A DNA stretch of 64,000 nucleotides from Macrostomum lignano. Its lineage: Eukaryota. Both the position numbers and the translations under genes were made by a program. Where the stretch lies: the NCBI GenBank assembly GCA_002269645.1, contig NIVC01001968.1, positions 55,800 through 119,799 of the forward strand, read 5' to 3'. Below the pieces are notes generated by a model, which saw nothing but the letters and a program-made list of their open reading frames with translations, did not search any database and was not told the DNA's origin. Positions 1,207-50,559 of the stretch are shown here, one piece after another (within the stretch, counting starts at the first letter, position 1; the number at the start of each line of letters is the position of its first letter).

Positions 1207-1994
1207 GTGAGTGACTTGCCCCGCCCACTCTGGCCTCGATATTCCGCCTCGCTCTCTCTCTCTCTAGTCTGGAGTGTTAGTCGCTCTCAAAAATATCCAC
1301 TTGAGCTGTGTTGAGCATGCAAAGCGGGGAGAAAGCAACCCTAGGGCGAGTCTCAAGTTTCTCTCTTGCCCTCTTGTCCCACCCGTGTCTTCCAAACCTT
1401 TCTCAGTCTGGGCTTGAACTAACTGAGCTCTCAACTCTTCTTCAGGGTGACCCGTTCTCCCTCCGCACCTTTCTCCAACCCCCCAGCCAGCTGTTTGCTC
1501 TCGGGCCTTCGCCTCTACAAATAAATGAATAGAAGATTGATAGATATTGGTTGCGATTATACACATTCCCCATCCCTAGCTGCCTTTGTTGACTCTCTAA
1601 TGGGGGCGACGGAGAATATTGGGCATCGTCACATCCCCAGCGTTCGGAATTTCTCTCCTATTCACCTTGTTTGCTGACAGCTCCGGAGAAAATTCGCTAA
1701 ATATCCTGTTGCTCCACCTCCCATCTGCCTGTCCTGTGTTCGATGTGTTATCATGCATATGCCTGTCCCAGCAGCTGCTTCCTGTTGAACAGCAATTCCC
1801 GACATCTGCCGCCTGGCGGGTTGCGTTTGCGGTTGATTACGTAATCTGAGATAGATTTGGCCCTGAATTTTCTATAGTTTTTGCGTGCATGTCGGTCTGC
1901 TTTTTGTGTCTCGTATTTCTGTCTGCTGACGGCTGTGGCAAACTTGTGAATTTGTGACGCCAGATGTGGATCATCATCTGATGCTCATGATGAT

Positions 1995-6651: not shown

Positions 6652-8032
6652 GCCATCCTGCTGCACCAGCATGAGCCAGGCCCTGCCTTACTACACCTCC
6701 TATGCGCCTGGAAGCCGTCGCGACTCCGAGCTTCAGTCGTTGCAGTCCTCCGACGCCCTGACTGACGTCGACAATCTGTCCCTGACTGACACGGCCAGCA
6801 GTCTGGACGCGGCCAGCTACCGGCAGCATCATCATCATCACCAGGCTCCGGGCAGTCGCAAAGGCCTCCGCCGGGCGATGCGGTGCGCCGCCTCCGCCAA
6901 CCGGGACGACCTCGCCAGCAATGGCGGCGGCAGCGGCGCCAGCAGCAGTTGCCGGCAGCAGCTCCTGCTCAGGCACCAGCTGCAGCAGCACGCCGCCAGC
7001 TGCCAGTACGACCGCGACCTGCCAGTCACCAATCCGGACAAGTTCGCCCGCCTACTGGCCGACCGTCTGCAGTGCCACCAGCGCGAGCAGACCCTGACAT
7101 CCCGGCCGCCGAGCAGTCTGTCCTGCGGCAGCGGCGCCGAGCTGCTCAATTCGCCCTGGGCTCAGCGAATCCTTCGAGCCAGCATGAGCAGCCGCGACAG
7201 CAACCCGGAGGACATCCTCACCGACCACCTGGACCACCTGGATCGGGGCCACTCGTCTCATCCGCAGCCGCTGGCGCCCCCTCCGCCCCAGCAGCTTCCT
7301 TCCAGCCAGCCTCCTCCGCTTCAGCAACAGCTGCATCAAAAGCTTGAAGCATCGGAGCTGGACCAGGAGACTCACGTGCACCATTATCACTATTATCACC
7401 ACTTCCGCGCCAGCGGCAGCGGCGCAACCAACAGCTTGATCTGCGGCGGCGCCGGAGCGGCCTCCACAGCGGGTGACAGCGGCTTCGGCACCATCTCCTC
7501 CTCTAGTCGATACGGTGGCATTCTTCGCTCCTCGTCAGCCACAGCGGCCGCGGCTTCGGTGGCTTCCACTTCAACTGGCGGCTCTGTGCACCGTCAGCAG
7601 TTAACGCAGCACGTGTCCAATCAGCTGGCCGCTTCCGCCCGTTTTGACCAGCCCCGTCAGCCCTTCATGATCGACAGCAACATGCCCGTGATGGACAAGC
7701 CCAACCCCGACACCACCATTGTGGAGGCCCGACGTCGTTTAGAAGAGGTCAGCCTGCAGCAGCAGCCACCGCCGCAGCAGCAGCCGCTGACCATCGGCTA
7801 CTTCCTGTGCGGAGACTCTGTGCCGTACAGGCACGCGTGGCCGGGCCAGAGCATCACCCTCGGCCAATTCAAGCAGCTCATGGCCAAGAAGGGCAGCTAT
7901 CGGTATTTCTTCAAGCGGCGATGCGACGAGTTTGTGGTCGGCGGCGCCGTGCACGAGGAGGTGACGGACGACTCTGAGGTGCTGCCGCTGTGGGAGGGCA
8001 AAGTCATCGGCAGGGTGGAGCGAGTTGAGTAG
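6652..8032 (+). CDS. Axin: Axin, large 3' coding exon (GSK3-binding helix, beta-catenin-binding motif, DIX domain); RGS-domain exons not seen in window
   Basis: PYYTSYAPGSRRDSELQSLQSSD...LSLTD resembles Axin1 PYYV..[38 protein letters not shown] is the GSK3 site (EPQKFAEELIHRL). NPEDILTDHL is the beta-catenin site (NPESILDEHV). QPFMIDSNMP..PNPDTTIVEARRRLEE is conserved. C-terminal LTIGYFLCGDSVPY..ITLGQFKQLMAKKGSYRYFFK..EEV..D..VLPLWEGKVIGRVE is a DIX domain. Acceptor CTCGCAG| at 6651 with an open frame to ATG 6671. Confidence 0.95.
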
Positions 8033-18024: not shown

Positions 18025-19053
18025 CTACTTGGCCAGCATCAGTGGCGAGCTGGGCCCGCTGGACTCCGCGCTGTTTCCAGTGCTGCTCGCAGTCGGCGTT
18101 GTGGTCGCCGCCGGACTCGGGATGGCCACTGACAGATCGTCGCAGCTCCAGATGCTGTTGTAGTCCGTTTTGAATTGCCACGACAGTTGCGGCTCCGGTT
18201 GCTGAAGCTGCTGTTGGTGCCGAGCACCCCAGGGCATTACCCAGTACATCATCTGATGCTGCAACTGCTGGTGCTGCTGCCTGAGCATCTGGTGATGCGA
18301 ATGTGGCCTGCTGTGCGATCTGGGTGGCTGACGGAGCTTCTTGCTGCCAAATTTGGTCTGGGCGAATGCGGCGGCCGTGTAGCATTCCTGCTGCTGCTGG
18401 CGCTGCTGGAACATCCACAGAGGGTCGGGCACGAGTGGCTGAATAGCGCACGGATGCTGCTGCTGCTGCTGCTGCTGTTCTTGTTGTTGCTGTTCGAGAG
18501 ACTCTGCCGAATCTGCTGCCGCCGTTTCCGACGAATAGAGCTGGGTCACTGATCCTGTTGGTTTGAGCAATACAGTGGAAAAGTTGACGTCTTATCAATA
18601 AAGTGCATCATTGACTGTCAAGATCTTTCTGTATCTACACACGTAGCCTGTCACTACCGATCCTATGAATTAATCAGGCGTTTTAGACTCTTAAATTACG
18701 TAATACTAAATATGAAGATAATATTACCGACCTTTCCCGCCAACCCTGCAGGACACTTCGCCAGGATCAATCCACAGAGTCAGATTCTGCGGCAGGTGCT
18801 TCATCAGCTCGCCGACGTCTAGCCCAGTCTCCTTGGCCGCCTCCAGTAAGATCGGATCAGACTGTTCGCCAGAAATTTTCAAACAACGAAAAGCGGTGCC
18901 CTTCAGCGGCTGGTCTGGGTACCAGTGACCCTGAAACTTGGCCGTCAGGTTGCAGTCTAGCTGCTCGCCGAACAAGTTCACCCGACGTCTCGGCAGCCGG
19001 TTGTACAGGAATGACAGGACGAAATTCACCGCGATCGACACTTCGGCGCGCAT
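18025..19053 (-). CDS. Tob: Tob (BTG/Tob antiproliferative family), 2 coding exons: 19053-18732 and 18554-18025, 283 aa
   Basis: MRAEVSIAVNFVLSFLYNRLPRRRVNLFGEQL..HWYPDQPLKGTAFRC (box A) and LPQNLTLWIDPGEVS (box B). The Tob-specific YTAAAFAQTKFGSKKLR lies in exon 2. Phase-1 intron AAAG|GTCGGT...CAACAG|GATCAGTG joins KG-SVTQLY. Confidence 0.95.
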
Positions 19054-19980
19054 GTTAAAACTTTGCTACCACCGGTCCGATGAGTTAAAACAGTTTTTTT
19101 GCCAAACTGCGTGGTCTGAATTGAGAGTTTCATTCAAAACTGTACCCCATCTTCGCTCCCATATATATATATATATATAGACTGGCCAGTGTTCGGGAAG
19201 GATTTTCACTCTCGCCAGGTTTGGGAGATGAGAATAATCTCTGGGCCAATGAGCATCCGGGGGTGAGAAATTCAGCATTCGGGTGAACGAACTCTTGGAG
19301 GGGACGGAATGAGGAGTAGGCGGGGAAAAGGTTGATGTTAGCCTATTTTTAGCCCGGCCAATGCACGGGACTTCCTGTTCCACTCCTCATCGCATTCAGT
19401 TGGGGATGCTAATTAGTCTGAAGAGGCGCGTGGGCAGCGGCGCACCACCGCCTGAATTGGATGCCGGATGTGCGACCGCCCGAAGCGGCTGCACTGGCAC
19501 TGAGGGGGTGAGGGGGCAGAGCTGAAAATAGTTGCTTGTTTTTTGTTATTTTTTTCATCCATTTCAAATTTGCAGACGATACAAAAATCGGCTTGCTTAG
19601 GGCTGAACCTGCTAGCAATACACATGCATGTACACAGTTAGTAAGCCAGTGGCACAACCCACCTTCAGTGCATCAGAGCCTACTGTTAATGGATTGAAGA
19701 CATATGATACACGAGTCTGTGTAAGAGACCCTATCATGCGTGTAATGCTGTAGGAGGAGAAGGTGGGAATCGGACTGATTGGCTGCCCTGAATTAAGGAA
19801 AATAAAAAAGGATTAAATTTCAGAGGGTATTCAGATCGCGGGGGAGGGAGAGAGGACAGAAAGACAGATACAGCCTCAGGGATTTTGAGAATGCGAGAAA
19901 TTGCAATCGGGGAAGTGTCAGGTGTTAAGAATGAAATAGAACCATACCGCTGAATAGTCAACAGTGGATGAGATCGATGG

Positions 19981-24517: not shown

Positions 24518-24688
24518 TAGACTTTATGACTTTATGCGTGAATAATATTTTGTTACTGTTCTTAGTAGCATGGCTGATAAGTTGATATTTCTCTGAGACA
24601 AGACTCAAGCAAAGTCGACCAGAGAAAAATAGCCCCTGTAACTCGAAATGACTTTGCAGAGACTAAGGCTCAATCAAATCCAATCGAA

Positions 24689-27600
24689 ATGGACGGTGAA
24701 GAGTTTCGTCAGCGCGGGCGTCAGATGGTTGATCTCATCGTGGACTATGTCAACAGCTTTCGCGACCGTCCCGTAGTGCCCAACGTGCAGCCCGGCTACC
24801 TGAGGCCGCTGATTCCGCCTGAGGCACCGCAGGAGGGCGAAAGCTTCGATAAAATCCTGGCCGACATTGAGCCCGTGGTGCTGGCTGGGGTAAGCTTCAA
24901 AAACTAGACTCAAATTTCTTCATCATTACGTAAGAGTGACTGAAGGGGAAGAAGGGCCTTTAGCGAGCCAGTCTCTCGCACCACGACCCTTGGCTTGATT
25001 CAGCGCGCGGTCGCCTCCATTTTGAGTTTGTGCACGAAAATTGTCCATGGCGTTGTCGTGCGATTTACAGCCATGTGGGACGAACCCCCAAGGCACTGAG
25101 AGTGTACATGACTGACGATTAGAAAACCAGGGCAGCTGTACACCGCGTGTGAGCGTGTGTATGTCCCCAGGAGTCAGTGAAATGGGTAGAATTGCCGTCA
25201 ATGCTGGTTGTGGGACGATGGCGCCGAAGTTGTTACGTCAGGGGGGGGGGCAATAGCCCTGCTAAGATTAGTTAGTAATACTATTATTACAACGGATCAA
25301 TCTCGAGCAACAAGTTGACGCGGCGCACGCTGGCCTGCTGCGCGCCGCCTTCAAGATCGGCTAAGAGCGAGTGACCAACGCGGCTTTGTATCACCGCGCT
25401 GGACTGGTCGGTCCAAGCGACCTGTTGCGCCGTCGGCGACTCCAGCTGTCAGACCACATCATCCGCGCCGAGTCGTACTGCCCAGAGCCGGTGCAGGAGG
25501 TGCTGCTGCTAACGCTGCAGGCACCCTACCGGCGGGGACAGGCGCACACTCGGCGTTTCGTCGACTGCCTGCTGGCTGACGCCGGCGCCCCGGATTCGGC
25601 CGGCAGCGTGGCGTTCATTCGCGACCTGGCCTTGAGGCGCGCCTTGTTACGCTAACTGCGTATTCTGTTGTTGTTGTTGTTGTTGTTGGACAAATCTTCT
25701 TTAACGTCCTGCAGCTTTTTACTTTTAACTTTATGATAAAATATCGCAAAATCTCTCAAAATCTTCACGCGAACTTTGTCATTCTCAGGTAACAAACCGA
25801 AGAAACATACTGTAAGCTGTTGGCTTCAAACTTCTACCCTAAAACCACTTAGCTTTTAGGGTTCGCTTAGCTTTTAGGGTCAATTCAGTGTGTTTGCTTT
25901 GAGTCTTTTAGTCTTAGTTTGAGCTATATTGCTTAAGTCGGGGCTCAGTTGAGGCGCTCAACTTGACATTTGCCTTTCAAAAGCTTTCACAAAGAAAAGA
26001 AAGTGAGGACTTCGTTCCTTAGTGTTTGTTTTGTATATATAATTATAGTCTTAGGAGAGAGGGTCATTTTCATTGCAATATGCATCTTTGGTGGCCGCCA
26101 GTCGGCTATAGTCTAGATCGATTCAAACGGCTGTCAAGTTCTGAAGTTTATTTGAAAATGTTGAAGAACAAAAAAGCAAATAAAGAGCAAACTCTGGGAT
26201 CAGTTAAACAAACTATATCTATTTAAATCTACATATGATGAATGTGATTTGTTAATAAGGCTTCGTTAGTTTCTCAAGGAATCTGTGTCTTGATAGAGGT
26301 AGGTAAAATCCTCAGTCTCGTGACATAAGATACGGTTAAAGCTTCTACTAGCTTCTTAATATGCTACTCTTAGTAGGAAGATAGTAGGAAGAACTTTTTT
26401 CTTTGAAATTTTCATTTCATTCTGGGTTTAAACACCTCCCTGTGGCGGGCAAGTGCAAGCGCACCTGAAGACGGCCGTTTAGGTGCTCTCGCGCCCACCT
26501 GCTCATCACGCCGCGTCTATGCGCCACCCAACCCCGGAGATTAGGAGTGGGGGGGGGGGTTCGCCCACCCAGTCTGAGCTACGTGGGGGTTGGGGTTGAC
26601 TGACTAACTAGCGCGTTGGCCTACTTAACCTGATTGTGCGCACATGCTTGTAAGAACTTTTTGCTCTCCGCAAATACAATTTCAAGTCTGCACGCAGTAG
26701 CTACTGCCCGCTTCATCCCTCCTTAAATTCCTGCTCAAGGTGACCAACTGGCATCACCCGAATTTCCACGCCTATTACCCGACCGCCAGCTCGTACCCGG
26801 CCATCCTGGGCGACATGCTGAGCGACGCCATCGCTTGTATCGGATTCTCCTGGGTGAGCAGAGCAGATGAGGGAGAGGCTGAGTTGTCAACGTGAATATT
26901 TTTTAGATAGAGTTAATTCCCGGAATCGCGATCCGCTCAGATCGCCAGTCCCGCGTGCACAGAGCTGGAGACTGTCATGATGGACTGGTTGGCCAAGGCT
27001 CTGGGCCTGCCGGACCACTTTCTGTTCAGTTCTGGCGGCCGCGGCGGCGGCGTCATCCAGGGCACAGCTAGCGAGGCCTCGCTGATGGTCTTCCTGGGTG
27101 CAAGGAACGACGCCATCGCCAAGCTGCAGGCAGCTGAGCCTCAGGGCGAGCCCTGCGAACTGCTCGCCAGGCTGGTGGCTTACACCTCCGAAGAGGTGAG
27201 TGCGGCTTGTTGACACTTTCTAGGAGTTTCATTGGATCTAGATTGACTGCTAGGGGAGGGGGGTAGGATGGGTGGGCAGAGTGTATGTAATAACGCGATA
27301 ATAACCCCAAAAATACCTAAGTTTGTGCTCGGCTTTTCATGCGTGTACCTACCTATCTATACGTGAAGTATGAATGTTCATAACTACTTGCTGGATGCGG
27401 GGTCAACTGTTGCCTTGATTTCTGTCTGCCACCTGCGAAGTAAGTAAGTACATGTAAGATATTGAGTTGACTTTGCTTCCAGGCTCACAGCTCCGTGGAA
27501 CGCGCCGCCAAGCTGGCCTTCGTTCGCATTCGATCGCTTAAAACTGACGAGAAGCACTCGCTCCGTGGCGACGCTCTCAAACAGGCAATCGCTGAGGACA

Positions 27601-29501
27601 GAGCCAAAGGTCTCGTTCCGATACTGGTAGGTGTTTTCCAGCTAAACACTGGTTTCTGTGAGAATGAGCTCAACAGAATTCCAATGTCAATGTTGCCTCT
27701 CTCGTCCATAGTGCATCGCCACGTTGGGCACTACGAGTTCCTGCGCATTCGACAACGTTAGAGAACTGGGACAAATCTGTGAGACCTACTTCTCAGTTAA
27801 CTTGGTGGGAAGTGGCTTTTATACATGATCCAATTTTCACTTTTATAGGTAATCGGGAGGGACTATGGTGTCACGTTGACGCCGCATATGCTGGATCGGC
27901 CCTGCTGTGCCCTGAGCTGAGGAACTTTGCCGATGGAATCGAGGTAAACAATAACGCTCGGATATTGAAATTCCGTACACAGATTATCTTGTATCTTCGC
28001 AATGAACACATTTGACCCATTTGATTCACAGCTAGCAGATTCGTTCAACTTCAATCCGCACAAGTGGATGCTGGTCACATTCGACTGTTCGGCTCTGTTT
28101 CTGCGAGATGCCAGCAAAATTGTGGAAATTTTCTCTGCAGATCCAATCTACCTTAAGCACGAGTTCACTGGTCAGCCTGACTACAGGGTAAAGTGGTTTC
28201 TATACAATTTTGAGCAACAGAAATCTTTAATAAATCTGTACCTCATACATATTTTGGCCTAGGAATCATCCAAGTGCTTCATAGTCACCTCTATAGTGTC
28301 CACTAATGTAACACCATTGCACACTCATCTACAATGTCCACTAATGTATCGCCATTGCATAATTACCTTTACAACATCCGTCACCAGTACACAGTCACCT
28401 CTCCAATGTTCATCAGTGTATCGCGATAATATTACTTACCTGGCAAAAAACGGCCAACATATGAAACTTACGTGACGCGAGACAACAGGTAATAAAGTAA
28501 TCCAAATACGAGGGGTAATATTTTTTGTTGAAGGACGGTTTCAACGTAGGTCTCAAAAAATATATTCATTCGTCAGTGAAGCATAATTTTAATTAGCCAG
28601 ATGAATTTTCAAATTCATTTTTACCGGTCTGTACGACACCACTGAGCCACTTATGATGCAGGCTTCTTCGTTGATGATATGATGAAATCTCAATGAAACA
28701 ATGGATAAGCATGCATTTCATAAATCCCATTGTCGAGCCGAGCTTACGACATCAAATTCAATTCAATTGTTTGCTTTAACTTACTAATTCAGATTAATCG
28801 GAATTGCAGCAAAACCACCTGGGACTGTCAGTTTGCAAGTCGTGACAAAATTAAATACGAATTTTTTTTTATATTCAGCACTGGCAAATTCCGTTGGGGC
28901 GTCGATTCCGCTCCCTGAAGATCTGGTTCGTCATGAGGTGCTTCGGCATCAGCGGGCTTCAGGCCTACATAAGAAAGGTGAGTTTGAAGATCAACAGTCC
29001 GGCAAAACTGGTTCAAAAGTGTTAGAATTTCTAATATTCGCTAATTCCAGCACGTCTCTCTGGCCAAGGAGTTTGAAGCTCTGATTCTGGCCGATGGTCG
29101 CTTTGAAGTTGTCGAAGAGGTTACGCTTGGTCTCGTGTGCTTCCGGCTAAAGGTATGCACACTGTTTGCATACACGTTGGTATGCGTATTGTTAGAGTCC
29201 GATTGGATGAATAAAATTTAAATGAGATGGGTTCAGAGAGAGCTGTTTGACTTCTCTGAGTTCTGACACTGCATAAAAGCAAGTCAGCGTTATCACCAAA
29301 TCACAGGGCACCAACGAAGCCACGGAGGCGCTGTACCGAACTCTACGCGAGGACCAACGAATTCACCTGGTGGCGTCCAAGTTTCACTCCAGTGGCGTGT
29401 ACTTTCTTCGCTTTGTAGTGTGCTCCAGCCAGTGCGAGTCAAAGGACATCCGCTTTGCCCACAGCGTCATCATGGAGGCTGCCAATAAGCTGGGCAAATA
29501 G
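24689..29501 (+). CDS. Ddc: Aromatic-L-amino-acid (DOPA) decarboxylase, 10 coding exons, ~475 aa
   Basis: Exons 24689-24889, 26740-26853, 26941-27195, 27483-27626, 27712-27778, 27849-27943, 28032-28187, 28879-28977, 29051-29152, 29307-29501; all introns GT-AG and phase-compatible. Motifs [70 protein letters not shown]-lysine SFNFNPHKW and [17 protein letters not shown] (DDC-type, not HDC NPSKW/LSRR). Confidence 0.97.
24930..25215 (+). mobile_element. Diverged SINE related to family B (shared central domain) in Ddc intron
   Basis: CCCCAAGGCACTGAGAGTGTACATGACTGAC..GGGCAGCTGTACAC..GGAGTCAGTGAAATGGG aligns to the family B core; head is degenerate. Confidence 0.6.
25290..25688 (+). mobile_element. 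5'-truncated non-LTR retrotransposon (RTE/RTEX-like) 3' end with (TTG)n tail
   Basis: Frame [52 protein letters not shown] resembles the post-RT RTE segment (LD..YTRLLR...SW..VTN..LY....RRRL..GH..R); in-frame stop at 25362; (TTG)n tail 25666-25688. Confidence 0.7.
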
Positions 29502-31470: not shown

Positions 31471-34400
31471 TTAGCGCGACGCTTTGGAGACCGCGGGACT
31501 GGCAGCAGCAGCTGCAGCCTCCCGGAACTGCCCACCATCATTGCTGATGTCGGGCCTGAGGTGCAACAGCTGGCTGCGTTGCTCGGTCAGGTTCTGCTTG
31601 CGCCACTTAATACGGCGATTCTGCGGGGATCAGGTAGAAGAGCTGATGACTCAAATTCCCGAAGTGTTCTGCCAAGTAGCTTAATCTCCTACTTGAAGAT
31701 TTTGAACAGGTTTTAAACTCGATGGAATTTGTGGAAATTTGAGTGCTCATCCCGCCGACCCCCCGCCGCCTGAGGACGCACAGGCTCTCACAATCGCAGA
31801 TCTATCTATCCCTAGATGGGCTCCGACCATAGACTGTAGCTTCTGCCGCTCTCAATAATCAGCAGCAGCTGTTGTCTATGGCCCAAACCCAGGGGGGCCG
31901 TAGCCCAGCGGTAGCGCAGCTGCTCTGGTGTGCCAGCGACCCAAGCTCGATTCCAAGTGCAGTCAAATTAATTTGGGGCTGAATTGGAATCTCGGCTTGG
32001 CTCTGCTCGTGCAATTAACGGCCTTGAGAGCCAACCCCCCAAGGCGCAGTGAAGTGTACATGCCTAACGATAATATAAAGTTAGGGCCGCTGTACACTCC
32101 TGTGTGAGTGTGTGCCTGCGTACGTATCCGCGCGCTTGTATGCCTGCTCAGGGGAGTCGGTGGAATGGGCAGTAATGCCTCTCGCCAGTTGTGTGCCAAT
32201 GTCGCTTAAAGTGCGCCAGGGTGCACACAACCCCCCTGCCTCTAATAAAAAAATGGCCCAAACCCCGTGGTTTTCGGGGCCTCGGAGCCAGCATCTGCCC
32301 CCAACATTCATTAATTAGCACTTACCTGGAACCACACCTTCACCTGGGCCTCGGTGAGATCTAGCTCCGCAGCCAGGTAGAACCGCTCCGAGCCAACCAT
32401 ATACTGCTGCCTCTCGAACTCAGCCTCGAGTCGTTCAAGCTGGTCAGGTGTAAAAATGGTGCGGATTCGCTTGCTTCTACCTGTAGGCTGGTGCTGCAGC
32501 TGCAAACCTGGTTGTTGATTGGAAAAGCAGGGGTAATGGCAATTCATGTTTTGACGAGCAGGTGTTGAATAAACAAACGACGATTATTATCTTAAAGAGA
32601 CCAATTTTTTTCTGCTCCTGTGCAATTGGAGCCACAGCTATTGTGTGCCTGAGCGATGGGCCACTGCAATTTCTGTTATTGAATGCAATGACCGAAAAAA
32701 ATTACAGAAATTATCTAAAAATATACCGCTCAGACACCTATCGTGCAATCATGTAGCTACTCGTATCTAGAGCTATCTAGAGCTGGCGTGCAATCATGTA
32801 GCTATCTAGAGAAATGCTAGAGCTGGCGCGACTTCAAGACTGCGGATGGTTTCCTTCGCTGGCACATGGCGATATCCGCGGACAACCAAAGTAGAAGTAG
32901 TGGTGTTTGGGGCGGCAATTTACATGCGATTTCCAAAGCCAAGAATTCTACATGTACATTCATTTTAAAGCCGCAGTCACTCATTTTAGCGCCGCAGGCA
33001 CTCCTTTTAGCGCCGCAGGCACTCATTTTAGCGCCACAGGCACTCATTTTAGCGCCACAGGCACTCAGTTTAGCGCCGCAGGCACTCATTTTAGCGCTGC
33101 AGTCACTCCTTTTAGCGCCGCAGGCACTCATTTTAGCGCCACAGGCACTCATTTTAGCGCCGCAGGCACTCAGTTTAGCGCCGCAGGCACTCATTTTAGC
33201 GCTGCAGTCACTCATTTTAGCGCCGCAGTCACTCATTTTAGCGCCGCAGGCACTCAATGTAGCGCCGCAGGCACTCAGTTTTAGCGCCGCAGTCACTCAT
33301 TTTAGCGCCGCAGGCATTCATTTTAGCGCCGCAGGCATTCATTTTAGCGCCGCAGGCATTCATTTTAGCGCCGCAGGCATTCATTTTAGCGCCGCAGGCA
33401 CTCATTTGCTAATAATGACACCCTACGGGAAATTTAAGAGTCGTAAATGCGATTGTTAGACTCCCCCCGTCACTGATTTCTGGACAAATAGTTAGCCTTC
33501 GGTAGTTTCTCTCCTTATCTCACATTGAATAAAAAGTAAATAAAAAATCATGCAGAGCTTTTGACGAGTGAAAATTTTTTGTCCATTCAAGTCATACCTC
33601 GGCAGGCAGACAAAAAATAGGCGGCAAATCAACGAATAAACACCTCAAACTTTATTCTGCTTTTCCCCTACATACAGCTTTCCCATTCACTGCGATACAC
33701 TCATACACATCATACACATCATGCACATCATACACATCATACACATCATACACATCATGCACATCATACACATCATACACATCATACACATCATACACAT
33801 CATGCACATCATACACATCATACACATCATACACATCATGCACATCATACACATCATACACATCATACACATCATACACATCATGCACATCATACACATC
33901 ATGCACATCATACACATCATACACATCATACACATCATACACATCATACACATCATGCACATCATACACATCATACACATCATGCACATCATACACATCA
34001 TGCACATCATACACATCATACACATCATACACATCATGCACATCATACACATCATACACATCATGCACATCATACACATCATGCACATCATACACATCAT
34101 ACACATCATACACATCATGCACATCATACACATCATGCACATCATACACATCATACACATCATACACATCATACACATCATACACATCATGCACATCATA
34201 CACATCAGGCACATCATACACATCATACACATCATACACATCATGCACATCATACACATCATGCACATCATGCACATCATACACATCATACACATCATGC
34301 ACATCATACACATCATACACATCATGCACATCATACACATCATGCACATCATACACATCATACACATCATACACATCATGCACATCATACACATCATACA

Positions 34401-37400: not shown

Positions 37401-38233
37401 GATTATTATTTGGGTGTCAAGATTCAAATTCTGGTGTCAGATATTCTAATTCTGGTGTCAGATATTCTAATTCTGGTGTCAGATATTCTAATTCTGGTGT
37501 CAGGATATTCTAATTCTGGTGTCAGATATTCTAATTCTGGTGTCAGATATTCTAATTCTGGTGTCAGGATATTCTAATTCTGGTGTCAGATATTCTAATT
37601 CTGGTGTCAGATATTCTAATTCTGGTGTCAGATATTCTAATTCTGGTGTCAGATATTCTAATTCTGGTGTCAGATATTCTAATTCTGGTGTCAGAGATTC
37701 TAATTCTGGTGTCAGAGATTCTAATTTTGGGCTCTCCTATTCTAATTCTGGTGTCAGATATTCTAATTCTGGTGTCAGAGATTCTAATTCTGGGGTCGGA
37801 AATTCTAATTTTGGGCTCTCCTATTCTAATTTTGGTGTTAGTGAAGGTGCCCATTATCGGGTGTCCATCAGGAGCAGCTACTCTAAGAACCGAAATGCTC
37901 TAACCTGAGCGATAACCTTCAGATGAAGTGTCTTCTGAGCTGAAAAAGCCCATAGACACTGCCAAGCTCACCTGCATCGCTTGCAGACGCGCCCGAACGC
38001 GTCACCTGCTCGGAATTCTTCCTATGCCCGAGAATTTCGTCGATGTTGAAGGTCGAGCAGCCGACACTCTGCTGCGGCTGCAGAGGCGGCGGCGGCGGGA
38101 GAGGCAGCGGTGGACACGGTATGGAATGATTGTTCAGCTGCTTCGAGTGTTGCTGCTGCTTCTGTTGCTGCTGCTGCTGCTGCTGCAGATATAACCAAGG
38201 AAAGTATCTGGCAGCCGCAATGAACTGCTCCAT
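31471..38233 (-). CDS. Not: Not-class (Noto/Not) homeobox gene, 3 exons: 38233-37972, 32507-32326, 31620-31471; ~197 aa
   Basis: Homeodomain [49 protein letters not shown]|NRRIKWRKQ carries Not-diagnostic QQYMVG and RRIKWRK. Exon 1 has the eh1 motif [10 protein letters not shown]. Phase-1 junction GCAG|GTGAGC...CAACCAG|GTTTG and phase-0 junction CAG|GTAAGT...CGCAG|AATCGC. Confidence 0.9.
31893..32235 (+). mobile_element. tRNA-derived SINE, family B, copy 1 (in Not intron 2)
   Basis: Box A TAGCCCAGCGG, box B GCTCGATTCC; colinear with the reverse complement of 63691-64000. Confidence 0.85.
32971..33407. repeat. 21-bp minisatellite (CACTCATTTTAGCGCCGCAGG)n
   Basis: Direct reading. Confidence 0.96.
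33703..34979. repeat. 9-bp repeat (CATCATACA/CATCATGCA)n
   Basis: Direct reading; gives three 430-440 aa low-complexity pseudo-ORFs. Confidence 0.98.
35119..35301. mobile_element. Small MITE-like element, 44-bp terminal inverted repeats
   Basis: 35119-35162 vs reverse complement of 35258-35301 match at 41/44; weaker similarity extends ~20 bp outward. Confidence 0.7.
35350..35668 (+). mobile_element. tRNA-derived SINE, family A, copy 3 (apparently full length)
   Basis: GGGTTGTGGCCTAGTGGTTAGAGC..GGTTCGATTC head; core TGTGTCCTTGAGCAAGACACTGAAC..CTGTAAAATGGG; tail AATAATACG repeats. Confidence 0.9.
36290..37835. repeat. 21/22-bp minisatellite (TATTCTAATTCTGGTGTCAG[G]A)n
   Basis: Direct reading, with duplicated degenerate blocks. 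Confidence 0.96.
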
Positions 38234-38311
38234 GTCAGGTAATGGTGATTAGTATAGAATCGGAGATGCTCGAAGGAGTTGTATGAGGCCTGGCAGGGCC
38301 AGGCAAAAGCA

Positions 38312-39688: not shown

Positions 39689-39734
<46 letters not shown>

Positions 39735-41045
39735 TCAGTGTCTGTCTTAGTGTCTGTCTTAGTGTCTGTCTCAGTGTCTATCTCAGTGTCTGTCTCAGTG
39801 TCTGTCTCAGTGTCTGTCTCAGTGTCTGTCTCAGTGTCTGTCTCAGTGTCTGTCTCAGTGTCTGTCTCAGTGTCTGTCTCAGTGTCTGTCTCAGTGTCTG
39901 TCTCAGTGTCTGTCTCAGTGTCTGTCTCAGTGTCTGTCTCAGTGTCTGTCTCAGTGTGTGTCTCAATGTCTGTCTCAGTGTCTGTCTCAGTGTCTGTCTC
40001 AGTGTGTGTCTCAGTGTGTGTCTCAGTGTCTGTCTCAGTGTCTGTCTCAGTGTCTGTCTCAGTGTCTGTCTCAGTGTGTGTCTCAATGTCTGTCTCAGTG
40101 TCTGTCTCAGTGTCTGTCTCAGTGTGTGTCTCAATGTCTGTCTCAGTGTCTGTTTCAGTGTCTGTCTCAGTGTCTGTCTCAGTGTCTGTCTCAGTGTCTA
40201 TCTCAGTGTCTGTCTCAGTGTCTGTCTCAGTGTCTGTCTCAGTGTCTGTCTCAGTGTCTGTCTCAGTGTGTGTCTCAATGTCTGTCTCAGTGTCTGTTTC
40301 AGTGTCTGTCTCAGTGTCTGTCTCAGTGTCTGTCTCAGTGTCTATCTCAGTGTCTGTCTCAGTGTCTGTCTCAGTGTCTGTCTTAGTGTCTGTCTCAGTG
40401 TCTGTCTCAGTGTCTGTCTCAGTGTCTGTCTCAGTGTCTGTCTCAGTGTCTGTCTCAGTGTCTGTCTCAGTGTCTGTCTCAGTGTCTGTCTCAGTGTCTG
40501 TCTCAGTGTCTGTCTCAGTGTCTGTCTCAGTGTCTGTCTCAGTGTCTGTCTCAGTGTCTGTCTTAGTGTCTGTCTCAGTGTCTGTCTCAGTGTCTGTCTC
40601 AGTGTCTGTCTCAGTGTCTGTCTCAGTGTCTATCTCAGTGTCTGTCTCAGTGTCTGTCTCAGTGTCTGTCTTAGTGTCTGTCTCAGTGTCTGTCTCAGTG
40701 TCTGTCTCAGTGTCTGTCTCAGTGTCTGTCTCAGTGTCTGTCTTAGTGTCTGTCTCAGTGTCTGTCTCAGTGTCTGTCTCAGTGTCTGTCTCAGTGTCTG
40801 TCTCAGTGTCTATCTCAGTGTCTGTCTCAGTGTCTGTCTTAGTGTCTGTCTCAGTGTCTGTCTCAGTGTCTGTCTCAGTGTCTGTCTCAGTGTCTGTCTC
40901 AGTGTCTGTCTCAGTGTCTGTCTCAGTGTCTGTCTCAGTGTCTGTCTCAGTGTCTGTCTCAGTGTCTGTCTCAGTGTGTGTCTCAATGTCTGTCTCAGTG
41001 TCTGTCTCAGTGTCTGTCTCAGTGTCTGTCTCAGTGTCTGTCTCA
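39676..41045. repeat. (CCTG)n followed by 12-bp satellite (TGTCTCAGTGTC)n
   Basis: Direct reading; source of the poly-VS and VCLS pseudo-ORFs. Confidence 0.98.
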
Positions 41046-43480: not shown

Positions 43481-44489
43481 TCTTTTTTCTCTATCCATTT
43501 ACATTTGATTCTATTCATCTATCCTCATTATCCTCTATCCATTAATCTATGCAGCTTTAAAAACGCATTTTTTTAATTTCCTTTTTGCCTACTCATATAA
43601 GTAGTGCAGAAAGTAAATGATTTTTTATTTTTAAAGAACATACTCGTAGTTCCTTAAACAATAGTATCATTGAGACTTGGCTGGAAAATATGTTGTTTAT
43701 AAGCATGGGTTTATTGTTCCAATTTCTTGCTTGTTTGAAGATTGCTCCTTTGCAAAAGGATAAAGATCAATTCCGAACTCGATTGCATTGCTCAGCGAAA
43801 GCGGTCAGTCAGAGCACAACTGTACAAGCCCAAGGGTTAAACAACGAAAAGCAACACACCTGTTGCGATAGCGCAAATTTACAGAAAGAACATTTAGAAG
43901 TCACTGGTTTTACGTTGAGGACAAGCACAAAAAGTTAAGCATATTCTTGTCGAGGTAATCAGTGGTTTAAGCATTTTTAGCAATGCCATACACCATTGGG
44001 GGGTAGTGCGCTGAGGTACAAGAAGAAGGTGCAGGAACTTTGTACAGACTTTAACAGACGGGAGTCATAAAAATAAATATATAGATAAATAATTAGACAA
44101 TATTGTAGTTCCAACCAAGAGTGAAAACTTCGCTCCAGTTGGTTTGGAACAGTCGGATAACCAGTGCAGAAACTCGTGGAGATTAGCTGAACTCTTTAAA
44201 AAGTTATGACTTTGTTTGACAGCTAAATAGTGTTTGATTGACAAGTGCTGATTTGACAGAAAGTGGCGAGTGGGCGAGTGGTTTGCATTCGCGAGATTTA
44301 TAGCCGAATAATCATAAATACGCGAGTAGTTATCGGTTCGTCTTATCAAGCTGAGTTAGTGGACTCGCGAGTCAGGCCTCTATCAAGTGAATTGGTCAAA
44401 AATAATGTGCTAAATGATTTGGATGAAGAATTAAAATATTTTTATGCTCTTATAACCTCTAGGATCCGCATTAATAGACCACTGTCAGA

Positions 44490-44918
44490 GTGTCTGATGA
44501 ATCTGTCAGGCAGTTCTGTCAGGAGATGAATCTGTCAGACAGTTCTGTCAGGAGATGAATCTGTCAGACAGTTCTGTCAGAAGACGAATCTGTCAGACAG
44601 TTCTGTCAGAAGACGAATCTGTCAGACAGTTCTGTCAGAAGACGAATCTGTCAGACAGTTCTGTCAGAAGACGAATCTGTCAGACAGTTCTGTCAGAAGA
44701 CGAATCTGTCAGACAGTTCTGTCAGGAGACGAATCTGTCAGACAGTTCTGTCAGAAGATGAATCTGTCAGACAATTCTGTCAGAAGATGAATCTGTCAGA
44801 CATTTCTGTCAGGAGACGAATCTGTCAGACAGTTCTGTCAGGAGATGAATCTGTCAGGCAGTTCTGTCAGAAGATGAATCTGTCAGACAGTTCTGTCAGA
44901 AGACGAATCTGTCAGACA
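44490..44918. repeat. 29-bp minisatellite (GAATCTGTCAGACAGTTCTGTCAGAAGAC)n immediately after the stop codon of the ACK-tail gene
   Basis: Period 29 (44586, 44615); internal near-palindrome CTGTC-A-GACAG. Confidence 0.95.
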
Positions 44919-44925
44919 TGATCGG

Positions 44926-45825
44926 TCAGTGGCTCTCGGAGCGGCAGAGTCGCTGCCTGCTCAGCTGCTGCACCACCGAGTCCAGCTTCCAGCTGTGCAT
45001 CTCCAGCAGCCGGCTGCATCGCTGCCTGTCACAGACGCCCCATCTGAAGAGCTGCTCAACTTTGAGGTACCTGGCCGCGCGCTCCGTGTCCCAGTGGTGC
45101 AGGCTGAGCGCCAGGTAGCTCTCCTCGTCCGTGACGCCGAACACCTCGGCGGTCACCCGGTGCACCAGCTCGAGCGGGGTGCAGCCCGGACCGCAGAATG
45201 ACATCGGCTCGCAGCAGGAATGATCCGACGCGCTGGACGACGACAGCCGCTGCTCGTCCAGCTGCTGATGTTTCCGGCGCGGCGGCAGAACCCAGTAGAT
45301 GTCCTCTGACAGCTGGCGCCCGTTGCGAACGATTGGGAGAATTCGAGGGCGCTGCGTTGAGATCAGCGAGGACTGCTGCTGCTGCTGCTGCTGCTGGTCT
45401 CCGGTGCCGGTGGACAGCGACCTCCGGCAGGCGCATCTCGCCATAGCGGAGGTCGGCGCTCGCTGAAAATCGTTCGACTCGTCGTGGTGATGGTTGAGGA
45501 TGGAGCAGAGGTCGCTGCTGGCTGGCGAGTCGGGTAGCTGCAGAGACGTCCTCGGCGTCAGGTCGACTGAGTCGCCGCCGCCGGCTCTGCTGCCTCCACC
45601 GACGAGCGACAGTTGCAGCCTGGGCGGCAGCGGCACCGGGGTTGTCGGCCTGGACCAGTTGCTGGCCGTCGATGCTGACGACGGCTTCTTCTGGTGTCTC
45701 TGCAGCTGCTGCTTTCGGTGCAGCGCCTCGTAGCTCACGTAGCTGCTGTCGGTTGAAGAGTCCAGAAAGTCCGCGTCACTGGCCGAGCCGCAGGACATCT
45801 GAGACGAAGACTCCCTGTTGCCCAT
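44926..45825 (-). CDS. ACK/TNK2 C-terminal-module protein (Pro-rich, Mig6-homology EGFR-binding motif, UBA), 299 aa from MGNRES; no kinase exons seen
   Basis: PVPLPPRL (ACK1 SPLPPRL). [24 protein letters not shown] (ACK1/Mig6 [21 protein letters not shown]). [55 protein letters not shown] (ACK1 UBA [48 protein letters not shown]). In-frame TAA just upstream of 45882; candidate acceptors at 45841 and ~45891. Confidence 0.88.
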   Translation of the reverse strand: [299 protein letters not shown]

Positions 45826-46265
45826 AACCGAGTCTTCGTCCTGCGAGTTGAAATTTTGAGTCGAAGTGTTATTGCTGAGCACTTAGAGCTCTGTGTGTGC
45901 GTGTAACCTATATCGGAGAGAACGAGCTGCTATCTGCGGAAACACTGTCTCTGAATCAAGATAAGGCCGCCTTTGAGCAGTGAGAAGGTCTCATACCTAA
46001 GAACTTCAGCTTGCACGTGAGAATCTGGTCCAAATCTTGAATAAAAACTGCTCACGTTTCTAGTGGGAGTTGGAGTTGGAGATTTTCGTTCTGTTTTTTT
46101 ACACTGAGTTCACTTTGGCCATAGAGGTCAGTTTTACAGTAAGATTACAGTTTTACAATCATGAGCAGTTGCTCACTTCATTCGGGCGGCCTTATTGACA
46201 AATAAATTCTAATTAGGCAATAAACAACTTTATTAGCCTGTTGTCAAATATGGCTGAGCACTCAC

Positions 46266-46525
46266 CGGATTTGAAGACGCACAGAAAATGGCGCAAATGT
46301 TGAGTTGAGCTCTGTCTAGTTCTATTCAACAGAACTGTTTTTCTACTCTCTAGGCGAATCTGGCTCGAAATGAGTGTTATTATTGACCTATTGTGAGGCC
46401 TGCCTATGCACTATTGCTATGCTTGCCCTATCACCCAATGCGCCATTCATTGGCTTTATATGGGAGGCAGTGGAAAGCATGGCTTGACAATATCGCTAGA
46501 AGGAGAGAGTCTGGGCCAATGCGGG
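46266..46525 (-). promoter_or_regulatory. Putative promoter and non-coding first exon of the ACK-tail gene
   Basis: Minus-strand donor CCG|GTGAGT at 46265; no ATG in the exon; three CCAAT/ATTGG boxes at ~46435, ~46449 and ~46516. Confidence 0.5.
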
Positions 46526-46914
46526 CGCTACTCCACCTTGGGGTTGGTTGCTGCTCACGGGGCTCGGGGCTTCCAGTTCGGGCGAAAAGAAGGGCAAGCC
46601 GAGCGCAAAAGATAAACGACAGACTGCCAGTAAGGCTTGAATTTGAATTACCAAAGGCAGCAAGTAGAAGGACCAATTGTGTGCGACTCCACTCTTGGCG
46701 AGTGTGTGTGCGTTTTTCTTGTCATTTTCTTGCTTCTCTCCACGTCTTCTTTGCTTTCCTGTTCCTGTGTGTCTCATTCAGCCTTTCTTTCTATGCTAGG
46801 TGTAAGAGACTCCATTGTTACCGAACTGGTTCAGTGCTCAAGTCGCGTGATCTCAACTCAGTAAGAAGCTGAGCATGATTATCATTCTCTTGATTGCATT
46901 CACTACTTATTATA

Positions 46915-49690
46915 ATAACTGTCTGATCCCATATCTACTCATTCTAGTGTCTGATCTGATCTCTACTCATTCTAGTGACTGTCTGATCTGATCTCTACCC
47001 ATTCTAGTGACTGTCTGATCTCATCTCTACTCATTCTAGTGACTGTCTGATCTCATCTCTACTCATTCTAGTGACTGTCTGATCTCATCTCTACTCATTC
47101 TAGTGACTGTCTGATCTCATCTCTACTCATTCTAGTGACTGTCTGATCTGATCTCTACCCATTCTAGTGACTGTCTGATCTCATCTCTACTCATTCTAGT
47201 GACTGTCTGATCTGATCTCTACTCATTCTAGTGTCTGATCTGATCTCTACTCATTCTAGTGACTGTCTGATCTGATCTCTACCCATTCTAGTGACTGTCT
47301 GATCTCATCTCTACTCATTCTAGTGACTGTCTGATCTGATCTCTACTCATTCTAGTGACTGTCTGATCTCATCTCTACTCATTCTAGTGACTGTCTGATC
47401 TCATCTCTACTCATTCTAGTGACTGTCTGATCTCATCTCTACTCATTCTAGTGACTGTCTGATCTCATCTCTACTCATTCTAGTGACTGTCTGATCTCAT
47501 CTCTACTCATTCTAGTGACTGTCTGATCTCATCTCTACTCATTCTAGTGACTGTCTGATCTCATCTCTACCCATTCTAGTGACTGTCTGATCTCATCTCT
47601 ACCCATTCTAGTGACTGTCTGATCTCATCTCTACCCATTCTAGTGACTGTCTGATCTCATCTCTACCCATTCTAGTGACTGTCTGATCTCATCTCTACTC
47701 ATTCTAGTGACTGTCTGATCTGATCTCTACTCATTCTAGTGACTGTCTGATCTCATCTCTACTCATTCTAGTGACTGTCTGATCTGATCTCTACTCATTC
47801 TAGTGACTGTCTGATCTCATCTCTACCCATTCTAGTGACTGTCTGATCTCATCTCTACTCATTCTAGTGACTGTCTGATCTGATCTCTACCCATTCTAGT
47901 GACTGTCTGATCTGATCTCTACCCATTCTAGTGACTGTCTGATCTCATCTCTACTCATTCTAGTGACTGTCTGATCTCATCTCTACCCATTCTAGTGACT
48001 GTCTGATCTGATCTCTACTCATTCTAGTGACTGTCTGATCTCATCTCTACTCATTCTAGTGTCTGATCTGATCTCTACTCATTCTAGTGTCTGATCTGAT
48101 CTCTACTCATTCTAGTGTCTGATCTGATCTCTACTCATTCTAGTGTCTGATCTGATCTCTACTCATTCTAGTGTCTGATCTGATCTCTACTCATTCTAGT
48201 GTCTGATCTGATCTCATCTCTACTCATTCTAGTGACTGTCTGATCTGATCTCTACCCATTCTAGTGACTGTCTGATCTCATCTCTACTCATTCTAGTGAC
48301 TGTCTGATCTGATCTCTACTCATTCTAGTGTCTGATCTGATCTCATCTCTACTCATTCTAGTGACTGTCTGATCTGATCTCTACCCATTCTAGTGACTGT
48401 CTGATCTCATCTCTACTCATTCTAGTGACTGTCTGATCTGATCTCTACTCATTCTAGTGACTGTCTGATCTCATCTCTACCCATTCTAGTGACTGTCTGA
48501 TCTGATCTCTACTCATTCTAGTGACTGTCTGATCTGATCTCTACTCATTCTAGTGACTGTCTGATCTGATCTCTACTCATTCTAGTGACTGTCTGATCTC
48601 ATCTCTACTCATTCTAGTGTCTGATCTCATCTCTACTCATTCTAGTGTCTGATCTGATCTCTACTCATTCTAGTGTCTGATCTGATCTCTACTCATTCTA
48701 GTGTCTGATCTGATCTCTACTCATTCTAGTGACTGTCTGATCTCTACTCATTCTAGTGTCTGATCTGATCTCTACTCATTCTAGTGTCTGATCTCATCTC
48801 TACTCATTCTAGTGTCTGATCTGATCTCTACTCATTCTAGTGACTGTCTGATCTCATCTCTACTCATTCTAGTGACTGTCTGATCTCATCTCTACTCATT
48901 CTAGTGACTGTCTGATCTCATCTCTACTCATTCTAGTGACTGTCTGATCTCATCTCTACCCATTCTAGTGACTGTCTGATCTCATCTCTACTCATTCTAG
49001 TGTCTGATCTGATCTCTACTCATTCTAGTGACTGTCTGATCTCATCTCTACTCATTCTAGTGACTGTCTGATCTCATCTCTACTCATTCTAGTGACTGTC
49101 TGATCTCATCTCTACTCATTCTAGTGACTGTCTGATCTCATCTCTACCCATTCTAGTGACTGTCTGATCTGATCTCTACTCATTCTAGTGACTGTCTGAT
49201 CTGATCTCTACTCATTCTAGTGACTGTCTGATCTGATCTCTACTCATTCTAGTGACTGTCTAATCTCATCTCTACTCATTCTAGTGACTGTCTGATCTCA
49301 TCTCTACCCATTCTAGTGACTGTCTGATCTGATCTCTACTCATTCTAGTGACTGTCTGATCTGATCTCTACTCATTCTAGTGACTGTCTGATCTGATCTC
49401 TACTCATTCTAGTGACTGTCTGATCTCATTTCTACTCATTCTAGTGACTGTCTGATCTCATCTCTACTCATTCTAGTCACTGTCTGATCTCATCTCTACT
49501 CATTCTAGTGACTGATCTGATCTCATCTCTACTCATTCTAGTGACTGTCTGATCTCATCTCTACTCATTCTAGTGACTGTCTAATCTCATCTCTACTCAT
49601 TCTAGTGACTGTCTGATCTCATCTCTACTCATTCTAGTGACTGATCTCATCTCTACTCATTCTAGTTGTCTGATGTATTCTCTACTCATT
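46915..49690. repeat. 32-bp (28-bp variant) minisatellite (GACTGTCTGATCT[C/G]ATCTCTACTCATTCTAGT)n, largest array in the window
   Basis: Period 32 (47041, 47073). Confidence 0.98.
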
Positions 49691-50559
49691 CTAGTGTAGT
49701 CTTACTAATTTTGAGAACTTGAGCAGACAGAACTGCAGTGCAGATGCCCAGTCTCTCGCCATCACTTCTCTCCCAGACTCACTTTCATCACCCTGGTCTC
49801 TAATGGGCGCTCTAGCCCACCCACTGCATCATGAGTTTACCCGCCTTTCACTTTGCAAGCATGTTGTTTTGCTTGAATTCAAACATTCAAAACTCCAATG
49901 CCAACGCACTCAGTCCGAACCCTGTATTATTGCCCTTCTCCTATCTTCTGCTTTTTGTTCTCTGCTCAAATTTCCTGCTCAGCGGGGCAGCAGCAGCTCC
50001 TTTGCCTTGCAATCAGCTCTGCAAGCTCGACTAGTTATCTGTCTTTATCTCTCTCGCGCCCCCTGTGCCGTGTGCATAATTAAGCAAGAAAGAAAATTGA
50101 ATTTTCGGCTGGGCAAAAAAAGTGGCCATGCGAGTTGCTGCTCTGCGCTACTCTGCTCTGCTCTAGTCTCAGAGTAGATTTTGTCACGAACCTTGAGCTG
50201 TAAATTTGAGATGAACAGCTGGAGTGAGAGATCGGGTTGGCGGGTTTACCAGTAAACGAGTACGTGGGGCCACTGCAGTGAGCACAAGGGCTGCAGAGAC
50301 ACTTTTATGGCTGGCTTTTGCTTGGAGAATTGCCAATTCAATGGGTATAATAGCTCACAGGCAAAGGGAATGTAATTAGTTAAATATTGCAGGTCATTTC
50401 TTCACACTGTGCAAAGCTGTTTGTTGGGGGTAATTCCCTGTTTAATGTGAAATGGAACCTGTTAAAATGAAGATCACTATCTTGTTAAACAGGTCACTCT
50501 TTAGATTTGTGAATGCTCACTCCCTGTTTCACGTTACTTTCTTGGTTTGAAGGTCACTA

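Follow-up and report, generated by a model that had tools for sequence, protein, structure and literature searches.

The locus analysed here raises the question of whether a short open reading frame (ORF) that encodes the C-terminal end of an ACK/TNK2-type protein, but no kinase, is the last exon of a conventional ACK gene or a gene in its own right. It lies on the reverse strand of a 64-kb stretch of Macrostomum lignano DNA, hereafter the window (positions 1–64000), taken from contig NIVC01001968.1 (119,799 bp; assembly GCA_002269645.1, Mlig_3_7), whose record positions equal the window positions plus 55,799. Our data support, with a probability of about 0.62, that the ORF is a stand-alone gene with a single coding exon, a member of one of three paralog families of ~300 amino acids (aa) in which the tail of ACK/TNK2 stands behind a new start of the form MGN(R/K)xS, and that its product acts by the mechanism outlined below.

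Comparison of the 299-aa product with known proteins revealed two regions of ACK type. When the protein alone was searched against the PDB with phmmer, residues 226–283 matched the UBA domain of human ACK1 (8THA/8FZ3) with an expectation value (E) of 3.7e-12, and the TNK1 UBA was matched at E=7.5e-5. AlphaFold2 (AF2), run with a 29-sequence alignment, predicted five helices at residues 217–298 with a predicted local distance difference test score (pLDDT) of 93–98. The top 12 PDB matches returned by Foldseek for this predicted domain were all the TNK1 UBA, with a root-mean-square deviation of 0.8–1.7 Å over 65–75 residues and a template modelling score of 0.87 against 7TCY_A. The TNK1 UBA (7TCY and related entries, ~1 Å) is its best structural match, although in sequence the domain is closer to ACK1. 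The Pfam model UBA_4 was borderline on the ORF (21.7 bits against a cut-off of 21.8). Based on the homology and on the model, residues 215–291 are predicted to adopt a UBA fold.

The second region is segment 2, the motif common to ACK and Mig6 (ERRFI1), whose pattern in the ACK family is ILPIxxDGxxxSxTHYYLLP. A hidden Markov model (HMM) derived for it from the tails of 18 canonical ACKs, vertebrate and invertebrate, scored 36.1 bits at residues 158–185, and the maximum in 3000 shuffled sequences was 7.1 bits. The Mig6 chain 4ZJV_C was matched at E=0.35 with the single protein, and at E=0.0024 over segment 2 with a small profile that added two relatives. In the AF2 model, segment 2 formed a beta-hairpin at residues 161–180 (pLDDT ~90); outside the UBA and this hairpin the model was of low confidence, compatible with disorder. 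A MAFFT alignment placed the protein collinear with the last 200–300 residues of invertebrate ACKs, from a PPLPPR motif through segment 2 to the UBA. Segment 2 and the UBA are thus, as judged from sequence, homologous to and collinear with ACK tails. The first-pass annotation of this DNA had reported clear ACK/TNK2 C-terminal motifs, and these were confirmed, with the homology shared by Mig6 and ACK limited to segment 2.

The same annotation had found no kinase, SH3 or CRIB coding sequence upstream of the ORF, and our searches agree with it. Regular expressions for kinase (HRDLAARN, DFG) and CRIB motifs, applied in six frames to the whole window, returned nothing. A probe of human ACK1 spanning kinase, SH3 and CRIB (the kinase-SH3 part, 337 residues, is 100% identical to PDB 4HZS) gave a best tblastn match of E=1.4 across the window and two further retrieved loci (L002 and L003), and no match within 10 kb upstream at two others (L006 and L007). 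Pfam detected no SAM, SH3 or GTPase_binding domain in the ORF, whereas SAM_TNK, SH3 and GTPase_binding were all detected in two canonical ACKs (P0046 and P0060). It also detected nothing in the few non-repetitive ORFs upstream in the window, where most of the 18 kb is minisatellite. As the defining catalytic and adaptor domains of an ACK kinase were looked for and are absent, the window protein cannot be classed as one. As window base 64000 is also the end of the contig, just 18.2 kb of DNA 5′ of the gene is present on it.

The ORF has already been deposited as a stand-alone hypothetical protein of 299 aa. Its translation is an exact match to one public protein, on NIVC01001968.1 in locus cluster Mlig008990, and two copies that are 99% identical lie on other contigs: PAA82580.1 (BOX15_Mlig008990g3) and PAA54161.1 (g2). 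In all three Mlig008990 copies the GenBank coding sequence (CDS) is 298–299 aa in length. The Mlig_3_7 annotation was built from genome-guided RNA-seq transcripts, with boundaries set by spliced-leader (SL) and poly(A) reads and ORFs by TransDecoder (PMC5730564). Copies g1 and g3 differ by seven synonymous, third-position changes and one nonsynonymous change, and the three copies together show one indel, a Gln codon that keeps the frame, a pattern that points to purifying selection between them. The DNA upstream of the three near-identical copies is ~99% identical over 1.1 kb, and its comparison was uninformative. No literature, in text or supplements, was found on Mlig008990, on the clusters Mlig010308 and Mlig027856 described next, or on TNK2 in Macrostomum.

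An HMMER scan of 1.84 billion representative proteins yielded 137 relatives. The closest after the near-identical copies was P0037 (315 aa, E=1.4e-33), which is PAA65865.1 (Mlig010308g1) and starts MGNRDSQ; we refer to its group as family B. Lower in the list of relatives was P0082 (296 aa; PAA88438.1, Mlig027856g1), of family C, which starts MGNKLSS. Further paralog copies are PAA54181.1 and PAA49458.1 (P0162 and P0163, grouped with P0037 and P0082). Families B and C lie on other contigs, and both have a single coding exon, a UBA, a segment 2 (RIHPILRGGRQISEDLFWVLPP and RICPILQNGRQVTKDFYWVLPE, respectively) and an MGN start. The segment-2 HMM scored 36.1, 26.2 and 29.0 bits in the three M. 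lignano families and no more than 7.1 bits in 9000 shuffles. All seven annotated loci of the three families have an intact ORF of ~300 aa and the MGN start.

The pattern of conservation among the families is informative as to where the protein begins. These paralogs are far apart in sequence and their linkers have changed freely, yet all retain segment 2, the UBA and MGN at the start; past MGN(R/K)xS, the N-terminal halves could not be aligned between families. The DNA just 5′ of the ATG, and its in-frame translation, were likewise unrelated between families. The families become similar precisely at the Met, which favours both a real N-terminus there and a gene that stands alone. Conservation of Met-Gly-Asn together with Ser6 is predicted by a genuine N-terminus of the type recognised by N-myristoyltransferase (NMT), and not by an internal Met of a terminal exon. 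The sequences that follow the Met in the three families (GNRESS, GNRDSQ and GNKLSS) each fit the PROSITE pattern G-{EDRKHPFYW}-x(2)-[STAGCN]-{P}.

These comparisons also bear on whether the ORF could be a functionless relic, either a decaying partial duplicate of the 3′ end of an ACK gene or an annotation artefact. Such an origin would be in keeping with our having found no function, expression pattern or literature for the gene, with the borderline Pfam result, and with the replacement of a near-invariant Leu of the UBA by Trp (W262). It appears extremely unlikely, however, as the ORF is intact at seven loci, synonymous changes outnumber nonsynonymous ones 7:1, the only indel is in frame, and segment 2, the UBA and the MGN start, but not the linkers, have been conserved in deeply diverged paralogs.

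The 5′ region of the window gene is consistent with translation from this Met. The ATG (45825–45823) is in a good Kozak context, with a purine at −3 and G at +4, and an in-frame TAA is located 5′ of it at 45885–45883. An MGNRESS start with an in-frame stop upstream had been noted in the first-pass annotation, and both are present. An AG acceptor is situated between this TAA and the ATG, however, so that the TAA alone cannot close the frame or exclude upstream coding exons. Further upstream are a TATAAA (46460–46455), one CCAAT (46453–46449), where three such boxes had been described, and three inverted ATTGG motifs (46677, 46520 and 46439). The GTGAGT donor described earlier is also present, at 46265; the candidate exon that it closes (exon b) ends at 46266, 441 nucleotides above the ATG, and no ATG occurs from 46445 to 46266.

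The earlier proposal that exon b is spliced to the coding exon (46266^45840) can be kept only as one of two candidates, and it had not considered SL trans-splicing. An older, independent model of a sister copy (UniProt A0A1I8FCB4, P0002) reads ...REQQTNPK directly followed by DEDSVMGNRESS, and thereby joins an exon end at 46537 to 45840. The first 28 residues of that model map to 46619–46537 in two frames (tblastn E ~6e-4 to 8e-4), and we called this region exon a. The donor consensus in M. lignano is GT[G/A]AG (PMC8629364), which the exon b donor GTGAGT fits and the exon a donor GTGGAG does not, although motif matching is not decisive between the two. As both candidate exons are free of ATG, the AUG of MGNRESS would be the first in the mRNA under either cis-spliced model. 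At the level of sequence, MGNRESS is the probable true N-terminus, one that fits the NMT-substrate pattern.

Proteins of similar build were also found in other assemblies. Four of them, P0043 (358 aa), P0068 (416 aa), P0093 (360 aa) and P0004 (221 aa), resemble the window protein in having segment 2 and an ACK-type UBA, no kinase and a single coding exon. They differ from it in lacking an MG start, and their UBA identity to the window protein is 32–49%. P0043, P0068 and P0093 keep THYW and PPIPPRDY. All four have a short spliced leader or 5′ untranslated region (UTR) before the coding exon, which is evidence at the mRNA level for the start. P0043, which is represented in >8 RNA-seq assemblies, has a short spliced 5′UTR and an in-frame TGA within the coding exon just 5′ of the ATG, so that an upstream exon cannot extend its ORF. 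In P0068 the genomic acceptor abuts the ATG, and the mRNA contig has an in-frame stop in the leader. Kinase-less ACK tails are thus not confined to M. lignano, although those found elsewhere have no MG start.

Additional variation was observed in the leaders of these transcripts. In the P0043 contigs (L008–L015), three different 5′ sequences join one coding exon before "ATGCTGCAG": a spliced 5′UTR exon, an unspliced intron with the acceptor ttgaacag and, in L010, another variant. Such differences point to the use of alternative first exons or to intron retention. The leader of the P0068 mRNA (L019, positions 1–132; Logan SRR25454219) ends ...GTCTCTTGGTCTGAAACGAATTTATGC just before the ATG and is similar to the SL of M. 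lignano, CGGTCTCTTACTGCGAAGACTCAATTTATTGCATG. It could be a flatworm SL of related sequence; we did not use it as SL evidence, as the leader is 129 nucleotides long, has no duplicated ATG and has a junction unlike that of an SL ending in ATG.

We propose that the initiator Met is removed and Gly2 myristoylated, which would hold an otherwise disordered protein at membranes. There, the UBA would bind polyubiquitinated membrane cargo, as do the UBAs of ACK1 and TNK1. Segment 2 (...EDIY177WVLPP), as a substrate or pseudosubstrate, could occupy the site at which a tyrosine kinase, either ACK or EGFR, binds its substrates. Acting in trans and without catalysis, the protein would then modulate the signalling and sorting of receptors and ACK, or serve as an adaptor in these processes, in the manner of Mig6. 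Its most likely origin would be a terminal ACK exon that was duplicated and gained its own promoter.

Several observations weigh against this reading, some concerning the structure of the gene and others the function of the protein. The acceptor at 45841 is in phase 0 with no stop codon before the ATG, so that an upstream coding exon could formally be spliced to it; the contig stops 18.2 kb upstream. The evidence for the CDS boundaries of the window gene is indirect, being the lengths and names of deposited proteins. In addition, when a canonical M. lignano ACK was sought with the kinase region of a mollusc ACK, none from Macrostomum was present among the best 120 of 396 matches. Two full-length ACKs of suggestive composition were traced to other sources, one to another assembly (GCA_006783055.1) and the other to an RNA-seq run.

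Given these features, the ORF could be the terminal exon of a conventional ACK gene, with the SAM, kinase, SH3 and CRIB exons >18 kb upstream, past the end of the contig and spliced to 45841, and with the Met internal. The phase-0 acceptor, the absence of a stop before the ATG and the coincidence of window end and contig end would all allow this. Moreover, in vertebrates and molluscs the terminal ACK exon encodes the same block of segment 2 and UBA, which ORF callers often report as a short "protein". Most of the short matches in the databases were indeed such ORF-called terminal exons of canonical ACKs (e.g., vertebrate "MPTTQSF..."). We nevertheless consider this explanation very unlikely. 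This is because seven annotated loci in three families each encode ~300 aa with an MGN start, and similarity between the families begins exactly at the Met. Additionally, the 10 kb of DNA upstream of four further loci gave no kinase match. At one of these, L006, a different gene on the same strand (3594-aa product, 3′ exons not ACK-like) ends 5.8 kb upstream. The A0A1I8FCB4 model, furthermore, joins the coding exon to a non-ACK, ATG-free exon 0.7 kb upstream.

A related explanation is that the ORF is a short isoform produced from an internal promoter of a long ACK gene, so that one locus would yield both a full kinase and a tail-only product. The TATA box, CCAAT boxes and ATG-free candidate first exons just upstream would suit such a promoter, and long upstream exons could lie beyond the 18 kb. 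The evidence against a terminal exon applies equally here, and each of the three families would need a long ACK gene upstream, when kinase sequence was found in none of the available DNA. We accordingly consider this explanation, too, very unlikely.

SL trans-splicing raises a different difficulty, also unfavourable to our reading. Approximately 30% of M. lignano genes are trans-spliced, to an SL that ends ...TTGCATG (PMC8629364). An SL spliced at 45840 would have its AUG in frame with the ORF and would add MDEDSV before MGN, which would abolish myristoylation. The gene would still stand alone, but translation from the SL AUG would give MDEDSVMGNRESS... The acceptor, TCGCAG, departs from [T/C]TNCAG, the motif enriched at trans-splice sites, although motif matching does not decide between cis and trans, and A0A1I8FCB4 shows a cis-spliced upstream exon. 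MGN is conserved in families B and C even though an SL joined at their nearest candidate acceptors would have its AUG out of frame, a pattern indicative of selection for Gly2 at the N-terminus. The SL sequence of M. lignano was absent from all loci retrieved. Overall, we consider translation from an SL AUG to be unlikely.

The remaining points concern how the protein would work. No second membrane signal was detected beside Gly2. The UBA has Trp at residue 262 (codon 45040–45042, LFRWG) in the window copy and its two near-identical copies, where >90% of relatives, including families B and C, have Leu (LFRLG). W262 occupies the position of TNK1 L636. Mutation of L636 abolished ubiquitin binding by the TNK1 UBA, which binds polyubiquitin of many linkages with a nanomolar dissociation constant (PMC8429728). 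Of the other positions compared with TNK1, the F634 equivalent is kept as F260 and the I625 equivalent is Ala, as in ACK1. In segment 2, family B (P0037, ~residue 176; L006 10001–10948) has Phe (DLFW) at the position of Y177 and Mig6 Y394, so that it cannot use the motif if this works through phosphorylation. A Tyr is present at that position in the window protein, family C, canonical ACKs and Mig6.

Lastly, no match to an HMM of Mig6 segment 1 was found in the window protein (P0001), P0037 or P0082, or in the invertebrate ACK tails that were tested. Segment 1 (MPxTQSFAxDPKY...) anchors Mig6 on the C-lobe of EGFR. A stretch of the ORF that looked like segment 1 (vs PKYVSSKALQRQ) was rejected, as the segment-1 HMM was null and the paralogs and tested invertebrate ACK tails lack it. 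The Pfam model Inhibitor_Mig-6 (PF11555) did not match the ORF at E<=1. On human ACK1 this model spans the segment-1 stretch only, and it is for this reason silent on the ORF.

The first-pass annotation had described the protein as a kinase-less, Mig6-like derivative of ACK. The part of that description concerning an own gene with a real MG start is upheld by the paralogs, the GenBank CDS, kinase-free DNA upstream at five loci and the mRNA support in relatives. The part concerning an inhibitor is weakened by the absence of segment 1, the Phe of family B and W262, and a role as a Mig6-like inhibitor of EGFR is putative.

Among known systems, the closest is the C-terminal region of ACK1/TNK2, especially that of the ACK1-like protein GAB1600128.1 of Argonauta hians. 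It has the same order of a PPLPPR-type motif, segment 2 (ILPIxxxGxQxSxxxY(F/W/Y)hhP) and a five-helix UBA with GVTxEE, and in canonical ACK the block of segment 2 and UBA is likewise on one terminal exon. The window protein differs in that it has the new MGN start and no SAM, kinase, SH3, CRIB or clathrin box. Of the features of invertebrate ACKs, it also has neither the TAxVKPF/YQN motifs nor the E-S-x-V end of PDZ type at the C-terminus, and its segment 2 has EDIYW in place of THY(F/Y/W). From TNK1, the window protein differs by W262 at the L636 equivalent, which is Leu in families B and C, and by having no attached kinase.

With Mig6, the protein has in common the lack of a kinase and the possession of segment 2; conceptually, each is an ACK-type regulatory peptide acting in trans. 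Mig6 has neither a UBA nor an MG start. The window protein has both, and it has no segment 1, no PF11555 match and no CRIB. Lacking segment 1 and CRIB and having a UBA, it is not orthologous to Mig6 but of independent flatworm origin. The most fitting description, in our view, is that of a kinase-less protein derived from the ACK tail, specific to its lineage and provided with a new start of the lipid-anchor type.

Table 1. Features of the ACK-tail gene (window positions; a slash marks a splice junction).
Feature	Position	Strand	Description	Basis
ACK-tail CDS	44926..45825	(-)	Single coding exon, 299 aa + stop, MGNRESS...RSESH*	ORF list, translation
N-myristoylation-type motif	45805..45825	(-)	MGNRESS (Gly2, Asn3, Ser6)	Sequence
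Proline-rich motif	45619..45648	(-)	Residues 60-69; aligns with PPPLPP(R/K)DY ahead of segment 2 in invertebrate ACK tails	
ACK/Mig6 segment 2 motif	45271..45354	(-)	Residues 158-185; Y177 = Mig6 Y394 equivalent	Segment-2 HMM
ACK-family five-helix UBA	44953..45183	(-)	Residues 215-291	phmmer vs PDB, AF2, Foldseek
3′ splice acceptor AG	45841..45842	(-)	tcaactcgcag/GAC, 15 nucleotides before ATG, phase 0; possible cis or SL trans-splice acceptor	
Candidate non-coding first exon b	46266..46430	(-)	ATG-free, donor GTGAGT 46265-46260; 5′ limit guessed, ~25-30 nucleotides below TATA box	
Candidate non-coding first exon a	46537..46620	(-)	ATG-free, donor CAAG/GTGGAG (G at 46536)	
Presumed 3′UTR	43624..44925	(-)	AATAAA at 43715 and 43629	TRF, pattern search

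The surroundings of the gene are highly repetitive. Tandem Repeats Finder (TRF) returned 66 rows for the window, with minisatellite units of 12–38 bp in arrays that are often 0.5–2.8 kb in length (e.g., 46903–49696, 44499–44918, 1994–3483 and 39730–41045). An array of 32 bp × 89 lies directly upstream of the promoter region of the gene, and one of 29 bp × 14.5 (44499–44918) begins 8 nucleotides past the stop codon, within the presumed 3′UTR. Several other genes or exons were observed in the window. On the forward strand, an open frame of 472 aa at 6614–8029, rich in Gln, Ser and Pro, has a terminal DIX domain (Pfam E=5e-27) and could represent a Wnt-pathway gene of the Axin, Dixdc1 or Dishevelled type, or an exon of one, and exons of a pyridoxal-dependent decarboxylase of the aromatic amino-acid type lie at 24581–29000. 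On the reverse strand are a BTG/Tob family exon (18727–19065, E=8e-38) and, at 32314–32583 and 37922–38248, a homeodomain exon (E=1e-17) and, 5.5 kb upstream of it, a possible exon with an eh1-like FNIDEILG. In the family B locus, the 3′ end of the neighbouring gene for the 3594-aa product (L006 1–744, forward strand) contains a stretch that by eye is TIR-like (...VVLAFASNEYQRSANCMMEFRFA...).

A domain review describes Ack1 as the sole protein homologous to Mig6 and the ACK-family kinases as the sole tyrosine kinases bearing a UBA, with the fly and worm ACKs lacking both the Mig6 homology region and the UBA (PMC10047419). A stand-alone, kinase-less protein with segment 2 and an ACK UBA would make a third architecture in the ACK/Mig6 family, and a kinase-less ACK tail would be a natural experiment on the role of the tail without the kinase. 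We can further envisage that flatworms independently evolved small, trans-acting ACK-tail regulators, as vertebrates did with Mig6. Three myristoylated, ubiquitin-binding families would then, at membranes, dock segment 2 as a pseudosubstrate on the kinase domains of ACK or EGFR and couple these to ubiquitin-dependent sorting. We regard this broader scenario as doubtful. If true, P0043, P0068, P0093 and P0004 would extend ACK-tail regulators into a wider, undescribed protein family. Were the gene merely a terminal exon, the result would be an ordinary one. The findings also indicate that signalling modules can be recognised among the short hypothetical proteins that flatworm annotations list as "UBA domain-containing". 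M. lignano is amenable to RNA interference and transgenesis is established in it (PMC5730564), so that roles of the gene in EGFR or ACK signalling, in endocytic sorting and in regeneration are directly addressable in this worm.

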